Shown one piece after another: positions 12,407-13,720 of a DNA stretch of 64,000 bases. The DNA is taken from NCBI RefSeq assembly GCF_000315625.1, contig NW_005434583.1, positions 32,032 to 96,031 on the forward strand, in the 5' to 3' direction. The notes below the pieces were generated by a model that did no database searches, was not told where the DNA came from, and was given only the letters and a program-made list of their open reading frames with translations. The position numbers and the translations under genes are program-made. Numbering within the stretch: the first letter of the stretch is position 1; every line of letters starts with the position of its first letter. Source of the DNA: Guillardia theta CCMP2712 (taxonomy: Eukaryota > Protista > Cryptophyta).

Positions 12407-13720
12407 ATGCAGATCTTCGTCAAGACTCTCACTGGAAAGACCATCACCCTGGAGGTGAGAGGAGGAGGAGGAGGAGGAGGAGGAAGCAGAAGAAGGGCAG
12501 GAGGAGAAGGACTTGCAGGAGAGCGAGGGATTGCGAAAGAAGCTCGAAAACGTTGAACAAGTCCGTTAGCATTGTGGAATGAATTAGGGCATGAACAAGG
12601 AAGTGTGACCAAAGAGTGTGATGACGTTGGGGCAATACAGCGAATTTGTGTGTAAGTTGGTGTAGTAGCCAAGAAATAGAACTACTGCATGCATCGCCAA
12701 GGTGTTCGATGAAGACTTGTGAGCTTAGCACCAAGCAGCTGCTGTGCTTTAGATGAAGCGATCGCAAACGTTGAGCGATATGATGCCGCCCGCGTGAATG
12801 TTCTCTTTTGGTCTTCTTATTTGTGAATGTTCTCTTTTGATCTTCTTATTTTGTGAGAATGGAAGTAGAGGACTCATACGGAGGGGGACTTCTCGCATGA
12901 TAGCCAGAGCAGTCCACTGACGGCTTAGTGTAGGTCGAGTCCTCGGACACCATCGACATGGTCAAGTCTAAGATCCAGGACAAGGAGGGAATTCCCCCTG
13001 ACCAGCAGCGTTTGATCTTTGCTGGCAAGCAGCTAGAGGTGATGGGATCCTCTGCTCGAGATCCCTGCAGCGTTAATTTGTGTCTGGAAACCAGGACGGC
13101 CGCACCCTGGCAGACTACAACATCCAGAAGGAGTCGACCCTCCATCTTGTCTTGCGTCTTCGTGGAGGCCATTGCCAGGTCCCCTGTGGAATCTTCGATG
13201 ACCCCAAGGTCCTCTCCCTGCTGCGAGCCGAGCGTCCTGCCTGACGAGCCTTCCAGCTTGTTGCCGAGGTGAAGGAGGCGTGCGCTACCATCCGCAAGGC
13301 CATGGTCCAGATCAACGAGCTCTACGGCAACATGAATCCGCAGAACTTCAACCAGATGACACGCTGGGTGAACACCAAGGAGGAGCATTGTGGCAAGATC
13401 ATCAATCTCATGTCAGGTGAGTGTGAAAGAACTCCTCTGCCCGCGATGACTGATGACTCCACTGCAGATTACTGCCTCTGCCAGCGTGTCAAGCCTGTTG
13501 GAGCTCCTGGCAGCCCGTTCACGGAGGAGAAGGACTTCATCGATGCGCTCAAGGCTCACCACAGCGTCATGGTCTGTGCAATGAAGTGCAAGCAGACCAT
13601 TGACGTTGCTGAGTGCGACAAGCTCGACCATGCTGTTGGAGGTAGAGATGGTGCTTTGTGCCGATCAAGAAGGATTGATCTTTCATAACAGACATGTCCA
13701 AGATGTACCTCCCAAAGTAA
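12407..13720 (+). CDS. sodN: ubiquitin-nickel superoxide dismutase fusion (Ub-SodN)
   Basis: Exons 12407-12454, 12934-13038, 13095-13208, 13257-13416, 13468-13641 and 13692-13720, all GT-AG. They give a full 76-aa ubiquitin ([76 protein letters not shown]). This is followed immediately by the Ni-hook [12 protein letters not shown] and the NiSOD helical bundle (...[10 protein letters not shown]...QRVKP...KCKQTID). Confidence 0.96.

Follow-up and report, generated by a model that had tools for sequence, protein, structure and literature searches.

[quoted passage not shown] Three-frame translation of positions 12000-14200 resolved this gene into six exons and five introns, all five of the GT-AG type. 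The coding sequence of 627 nt starts with an ATG at 12407 and encodes 209 amino acids, of which 76 belong to ubiquitin and 133 to NiSOD. The features of the locus, including the nearest downstream open reading frame, are as follows.

12407-12454, + strand: exon 1, ubiquitin residues 1-16; identical to residues 1-16 of XP_005824722.1
12455-12933, + strand: intron 1, 479 nt, GT..AG, phase 0
12934-13038, + strand: exon 2, ubiquitin residues 17-51; identical to residues 17-51 of XP_005824722.1; Pfam PF00240 at 49.4 bits on the exon alone
13039-13094, + strand: intron 2, 56 nt, phase 0
13095-13208, + strand: exon 3, ubiquitin residues 52-76 and NiSOD residues 1-13, with the fusion junction inside; identical to residues 52-89 of XP_005824722.1
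13152-13169, + strand: LRLRGG, ubiquitin C-terminal tail, the proposed recognition and cleavage site of deubiquitinases (cut after Gly76)
13170-13199, + strand: Ni-hook 10-mer with the Ni ligands His1, Cys2 and Cys6, and Phe at position 9
13209-13256, + strand: intron 3, 48 nt, phase 0, with an in-frame TGA
13257-13416, + strand: exon 4, NiSOD helices 1-2; Sod_Ni profile positions 22-66 at 32.4 bits; identical to residues 90-142 of XP_005824722.1
13417-13467, + strand: intron 4, 51 nt, phase 1, open in frame
13468-13641, + strand: exon 5, NiSOD helices 3-4; Sod_Ni profile positions 73-116 at 32.4 bits; identical to residues 144-200 of XP_005824722.1
13642-13691, + strand: intron 5, 50 nt, phase 1
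13692-13720, + strand: exon 6, the last eight full codons (MSKMYLPK) and the stop codon TAA at 13718-13720
14060-15853, - strand: intronless open reading frame for a NarK/NRT2-type nitrate/nitrite MFS transporter, 597 aa; TIGR00886 at 287.7 bits against a cut-off of 311.7

Gene structure and prior record

The product of the gene is XP_005824722.1 (also EKX37742.1 and UniRef100_L1INU9), a protein of 209 aa from G. theta CCMP2712. The translation of every exon was found to equal the corresponding part of this record, the two split codons included, and an independent search for any chain of GT-AG exons yielding the same protein returned the same six exons, in agreement with the five introns proposed in the first-pass annotation. 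That annotation had also placed a complete ubiquitin, ending in LRLRGG, in one exon with His1 of the NiSOD, and this placement is exact to the base: the codons TTG CGT CTT CGT GGA GGC are directly followed by the His1 codon CAT at 13170-13172. Because the ubiquitin tail and the Ni-hook share exon 3, the in-frame junction does not depend on any splice. Profile searches were carried out on single exons, and the steps requiring the whole protein used the database record, which is identical exon by exon. Exon 3, with 38 aa, was matched by both the ubiquitin profile (positions 50-72) and the Sod_Ni profile (positions 5-16); over the whole gene, the ubiquitin matches fall on exons 2 and 3 and those to Sod_Ni on exons 3 to 5, with collinear profile positions.

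In theory, such a split gene could stem from a wrong joining of ubiquitin exons to NiSOD exons, be it an artifact of annotation or assembly or a pseudogene. Five introns are needed to build the reading frame, and intron 4, being open in frame, could in principle code. Its retention would add 17 amino acids, which are present in no homologue. The evidence against a wrong joining is, however, of several kinds: the junction lies within one exon, the introns follow the GT-AG rule, and the five exon junctions are gap-free against 53 full-length homologues, many of them from transcriptomes, apart from one column near intron 4 that reflects an insertion in a single homologue. In addition, when 13257-13640, which is open throughout, was used as the query of a word search, 492 relatives were retrieved, led by XP_005824722.1 itself (87% identity, as the query reads through intron 4), and the ubiquitin-NiSOD architecture was found in hundreds of proteins. 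RNA-seq support for the fusion has also been stated (Sibbald et al., 2019; PMC6332867). An artifact or a pseudogene is effectively refuted, and the probability left to it is negligible.

Some further properties of the gene may be recorded here. Intron 1 exceeds the other four introns in length roughly tenfold; it opens with a (GAG)n run (12459-12511) and further on contains a tandem duplication of 29 nt (12794-12856). A search of intron 1 for a hidden RNA gave no Rfam match, and its predicted folding was no better than that of shuffled sequences (z +0.56). Upstream of the start codon, in-frame ATGs occur at 12296-12298 and 12308-12310, with no stop codon before 12407; translation from either would lengthen ubiquitin by as many as 37 residues and leave NiSOD unchanged. 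The last 95 nt before 12407 contain no ATG, and relatives start at MQIF.

The gene has a prior record. XP_005824722.1 is named ubiquitin-superoxide dismutase fusion protein by NCBI, and the accession is entered in Table 2 of Sibbald et al. (2019; PMC6332867) as the ubiquitin-NiSOD fusion of G. theta, there with a length of 210 aa versus 209 aa in the record and in the window. The same study reported the fusion from 114 eukaryotes besides G. theta and B. natans, nearly all of them marine phototrophs. The spread of plastids has been traced with the fusion as a marker. Most diatoms carry it as well, and ubiquitin-specific proteases have been proposed to cut at the point where the bacterial leader ends, thereby activating the Ni-hook (Groussman et al., 2015; PMC4460010). 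Ostreococcus was the first eukaryotic source noted for such genes (PMC4460010, PMC6332867), and a 2021 review described the significance of the ubiquitin-NiSOD fusion as unknown. Thus, the ubiquitin-NiSOD gene, together with a proposed mechanism, is already annotated and published and is not new. The first-pass annotation had recognized that such fusions are known from marine algae, a statement borne out by the two studies (PMC4460010, PMC6332867) for the family and for this very gene; it further remarked that the open reading frame track hides the gene, but the gene is not hidden, considering the NCBI name and the entry in Table 2.

Ubiquitin and NiSOD halves of the fusion protein

The ubiquitin half of the protein was matched by Pfam PF00240 at 107.5 bits (E 2.9e-31, residues 3-74 of XP_005824722.1), and its AlphaFold model superimposes on 1UBQ with a TM score of 0.97 and an rmsd of 0.8 Å at 93% identity. 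In the sequence, the lysines K6, K11, K27, K29, K33, K48 and K63 and the L8/I44/V70 patch are all present. Compared with the 53 relatives that carry a leader of 76 aa, to which the median identity is 92%, the G. theta ubiquitin differs from the commonest residues at positions 25 (Met versus Asn) and 28 (Ser versus Ala). By these measures, the ubiquitin half appears near-canonical.

The NiSOD half was assigned to the Sod_Ni family (PF09055) at 103.6 bits against a cut-off of 25 (E 1.4e-29), with residues 77-207 of XP_005824722.1 covering profile positions 6-124 of 127. The E values of both halves put the two domain matches far beyond chance. The heptapeptide HCQVPCG encoded at 13170-13190 fits the pattern H-C-x-x-P-C-G and aligns with HCDLPCG of the Streptomyces enzyme (1Q0D). 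An AlphaFold model based on a 54-sequence alignment consists of a beta-grasp domain followed by four helices, with residues 75-84, comprising the two glycines and the hook, modeled as disordered (pLDDT < 50). As ubiquitin dominated the matches when the entire fusion was compared by fold, the NiSOD half was also modeled separately, and gave a pLDDT of 87.8. The top seven rows of the VIA-align comparison with this model are all Streptomyces NiSOD, with Z of 12.4-12.6 and rmsd of 2.3-2.9 Å over 106-110 residues, whereas other helical bundles reach Z ≤ 11.0; such a modest margin is common among helical bundles. The Foldseek list is likewise headed by Streptomyces NiSOD entries.

At the level of sequence, the resemblance to bacterial NiSOD is thin. 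The NCBIfam sodN equivalog TIGR02753, a model trained on bacterial proteins, scored 28.4 bits, below its cut-off of 90 bits; phmmer with the NiSOD half against the PDB gave no match, and a profile of 41 relatives recovered Streptomyces NiSOD 1Q0D at an E value of 0.78 only. A six-frame search of the G. theta genome with TIGR02753 returned no match, missing even the fusion locus; the controls gave none either, and the search carries no information. Searched as DNA, the HCxxPCG pattern occurred 21 times in the genome versus 11 times in the reversed control, and all matches but that at the fusion locus translate to noise. These genome searches covered the 87.1-Mb assembly of 669 contigs. The eukaryotic NiSOD clade is divergent, and with so thin a likeness and so modest a margin in the fold comparison, membership in the NiSOD family and equivalent function rest on the Pfam match, the hook and the fold taken together.

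The hook itself carries a difference from the bacterial enzyme. Position 9 of the hook (13194-13196) is Phe in 100 of 101 hook-bearing relatives, and the complete 10-mer is identical in 99 of them. In the Streptomyces hook HCDLPCGVYD (1Q0D), this position is Tyr, and the motif H-C-x-x-P-C-G-x-Y given by Groussman et al. (2015; PMC4460010) also ends in Tyr, a motif from which the fusion hook with Phe9 departs. Phe9 is a clade-wide difference at a residue of the second sphere, which is not a metal ligand. A Y9F mutant of Streptomyces NiSOD has been crystallized (3G4X).

Proposed cleavage after Gly76 and exposure of His1

In NiSOD, His1 contributes its N-terminal amine and its imidazole to nickel binding, Cys2 its amidate and thiolate, and Cys6 its thiolate (PMC11273360), coordination chemistry that agrees with the dependence on a free N-terminal His amine noted in the first-pass annotation. 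Since the His1 amine is itself a ligand, any residue ahead of His1 blocks the site. Deubiquitinases cleave linear ubiquitin fusions after Gly76 whatever residue follows, with the exception of Pro. In the proposed mechanism, a near-canonical ubiquitin of 76 aa would be translated directly ahead of His1 of the NiSOD, and USP-type or UCH-type deubiquitinases of the cytosol, enzymes by which every natural ubiquitin precursor is processed after Gly76, would cut between Gly76 and His77, releasing one ubiquitin and a NiSOD that starts at His1. Through the ligand groups of His1, Cys2 and Cys6 named above, the hook would then close round nickel on the four-helix bundle, and the product would be an active, probably cytosolic NiSOD. 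A deubiquitinase would in this way do the task of the bacterial leader peptidase SodX. A cytosolic enzyme is the likeliest because relatives have no sequence before Met1, and an N-terminal targeting signal would be lost on cleavage. Candidate enzymes for the cut are encoded in the G. theta genome, in which 47 USP-domain matches were found, along with matches to Peptidase_C12 (UCH) at three loci, on contigs C19 and C274 and, as a short match, on contig C8. The reading of ubiquitin as a cleavable leader, put forward in the first-pass annotation, is supported by both the sequence and the literature, and a ubiquitin-NiSOD matured by deubiquitinases is very probably the best explanation of the gene; cleavage, nickel loading, activity and location are the parts of it that we infer. 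A search of the literature for experiments on cleavage, the N-terminus, nickel binding or activity of eukaryotic fusions found none.

The junction is the most constant part of the family. The residues G75 G76 H77 C78 Q79 V80 P81 C82 G83 are invariant in all 54 full-length fusions, and LRLRGG precedes the hook in 67 of the 101 hook-bearing relatives. In most of the remaining relatives, the leader has decayed to a ubiquitin-like sequence of 69-77 aa with 39-60% identity, in which GG still abuts His1. These leaders, which occur in chlorarachniophytes and in many metagenomic or transcriptomic relatives, end in LDVLGG, LRLLGG, LTLPGG and similar sequences, and never is there a linker before the hook. 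The hook begins at residue 77 in 54 of the 101 relatives, and nothing lies ahead of Met1 in the homologues. As GG followed by His is kept although the ubiquitin half has decayed, selection acts on the cut site.

This pattern bears on a different reading, in which ubiquitin mainly assists folding and expression or serves as a stoichiometric source of ubiquitin, and the exposure of His1 is a by-product. The ubiquitin half of G. theta is intact, and with its lysines and its L8/I44/V70 patch it would be released as usable ubiquitin; moreover, Ub-eL40 and Ub-eS31 fusions act in this manner (PMC8122580). The many relatives with decayed ubiquitin and yet a fixed, linker-free GG-hook junction count against supply, and the conservation pattern favors a leader role over ubiquitin supply. 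A by-product origin of the free His1 is thus considered unlikely. The beta-grasp domain could, at the same time, help folding alongside its role as a leader.

A regulated pro-enzyme has also to be considered, in which the uncleaved, inactive fusion builds up and a specific deubiquitinase activates it on demand only, for instance on oxidative stress or when nickel can be had. The chemistry of NiSOD is compatible with such a latent form, given that the hook cannot form with Gly76 attached to His1, and control through ubiquitin pathways has been raised (PMC4460010). Nevertheless, the junction is unprotected, with LRLRGG and the following His lying in the stretch that is modeled as disordered (residues 75-84). 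Linear ubiquitin fusions are, furthermore, generally cut co-translationally and non-selectively, and accumulation of an inactive precursor is therefore very improbable.

Removal of ubiquitin would have a further consequence. An N-terminal His is a type-1 destabilizing residue that is recognized by UBR-box ligases, and three UBR-box genes were found in the G. theta genome. These genes, and the hook being modeled as disordered without metal, allow the tentative idea that His1, once bared by the cut after Gly76, is an N-degron masked by nickel: in unloaded NiSOD His1 would stay exposed and disordered and the protein would be degraded, whereas bound nickel would draw the amine and imidazole into the hook and so conceal the degron. 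This idea, which is rather improbable, was not found for NiSOD in the literature searched. If true, the ubiquitin fusion would not only replace SodX but also add a nickel-dependent quality control.

Comparison with known systems and a second NiSOD gene

The closest system is the ubiquitin-NiSOD family of marine algae (PMC6332867), of which the G. theta gene is itself a member, with one ubiquitin abutting His1 and no linker. Nothing of substance differs, apart from a near-canonical ubiquitin in G. theta versus a decayed one in chlorarachniophytes. In this family, housekeeping proteases of the eukaryote itself would solve a maturation problem known from bacteria, as already published for XP_005824722.1.

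Streptomyces SodN (1T6U / 1Q0D) resembles the NiSOD half in its four-helix bundle (Z 12.6) and in the hook residues His1, Cys2, Pro5, Cys6 and Gly7, and in both proteins the leader must be removed exactly before His1. The two differ in the leader, which is a whole ubiquitin in G. theta and about 14 residues in bacterial SodN, and in the presumed protease, a cysteine deubiquitinase in the former and the S26-type serine peptidase SodX in the latter. In addition, Asp3 and Tyr9 of the Streptomyces hook are replaced by Gln and Phe, respectively, and the identity in structural alignments is about 11-19%.

Ub-eL40, Ub-eS31 and polyubiquitin precursors have in common with the fusion an N-terminal, in-frame ubiquitin that is freed by deubiquitinases after Gly76, and ubiquitin-ribosomal fusions and polyubiquitin precursors are among the PDB sequence matches of the G. 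theta protein. In those proteins, the residue that cleavage leaves at the start of the partner is not known to play a chemical part, whereas in the NiSOD fusion it is a metal ligand. The same logic is found in the ubiquitin-fusion technique of the Varshavsky laboratory, in which cleavage by deubiquitinases reportedly yields a protein starting with a chosen residue other than Met, an N-terminal His being described as destabilizing; that technique uses an engineered construct, whereas the G. theta fusion is a natural gene.

SodX was sought in the G. theta genome with the NCBIfam model TIGR02754 (sod_Ni_protease). The best match, at C63:44270-44431, reached 28 bits against a cut-off of 63.25, in a six-frame, exon-by-exon search that a diverged or intron-rich SodX could escape. 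This match was rejected as a generic S24/S26 match, because the same model also gives matches below the cut-off in E. coli and B. subtilis.

A second NiSOD gene without ubiquitin was found on contig C59, on the + strand at about 319.4-320.3 kb. It is split by introns, with a family-profile match at C59:319934-320020 and collinear exons corresponding to profile positions 1-14, 40-67, 68-92 and 94-126. Its upstream exon encodes the leader MLLRSLKTVATASFGLAGANLLLSNRPREAFA followed by HCQ and a GT intron, and the next exon opens with VPCGIFDD. Since the hook is thereby divided by an intron, the gene was missed by both the six-frame Pfam search and the HCxxPCG DNA pattern. The gene probably corresponds to the stand-alone NiSOD of G. 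theta mentioned by Sibbald et al. (JGI 112465; PMC6332867). The leader ends in AFA/HCQ (the slash marking the point ahead of His1), an Ala-x-Ala sequence resembling a signal-peptidase or SodX site. Maturation of NiSOD by a peptidase has thus probably not been wholly given up in G. theta, and two routes to a free His1 seem to operate in one cell. The proposal in the first-pass annotation that the fusion replaces SodX is therefore upheld in part: no SodX match at or above the NCBIfam cut-off was found, but the genome also encodes a NiSOD with a conventional leader. This paralogue, the prevalence of Phe9, the constancy of GG-His despite ubiquitin decay and the lineage-specific intron positions described next are small additions to what was reported previously (PMC6332867, PMC4460010).

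Introns interrupt the fusion gene at different places in different lineages, and their number is five in G. theta, one in Amorphochlora amoebiformis and four in Prymnesium parvum. Among these three organisms, only two near-coincidences were observed (a slash here marking the intron). The first, HAVG/D, is of phase 1 in G. theta and of phase 0 in Amorphochlora, one base apart; the second, HCQ/VPCG, is common to the C59 paralogue of G. theta and the Prymnesium fusion. According to tblastn, the intron in the Prymnesium hook appears to be of the GC-AG type. In the window, the NarK/NRT2-type transporter open reading frame at 14060-15853 follows 339 nt downstream of the NiSOD gene, the two being arranged tail to tail.
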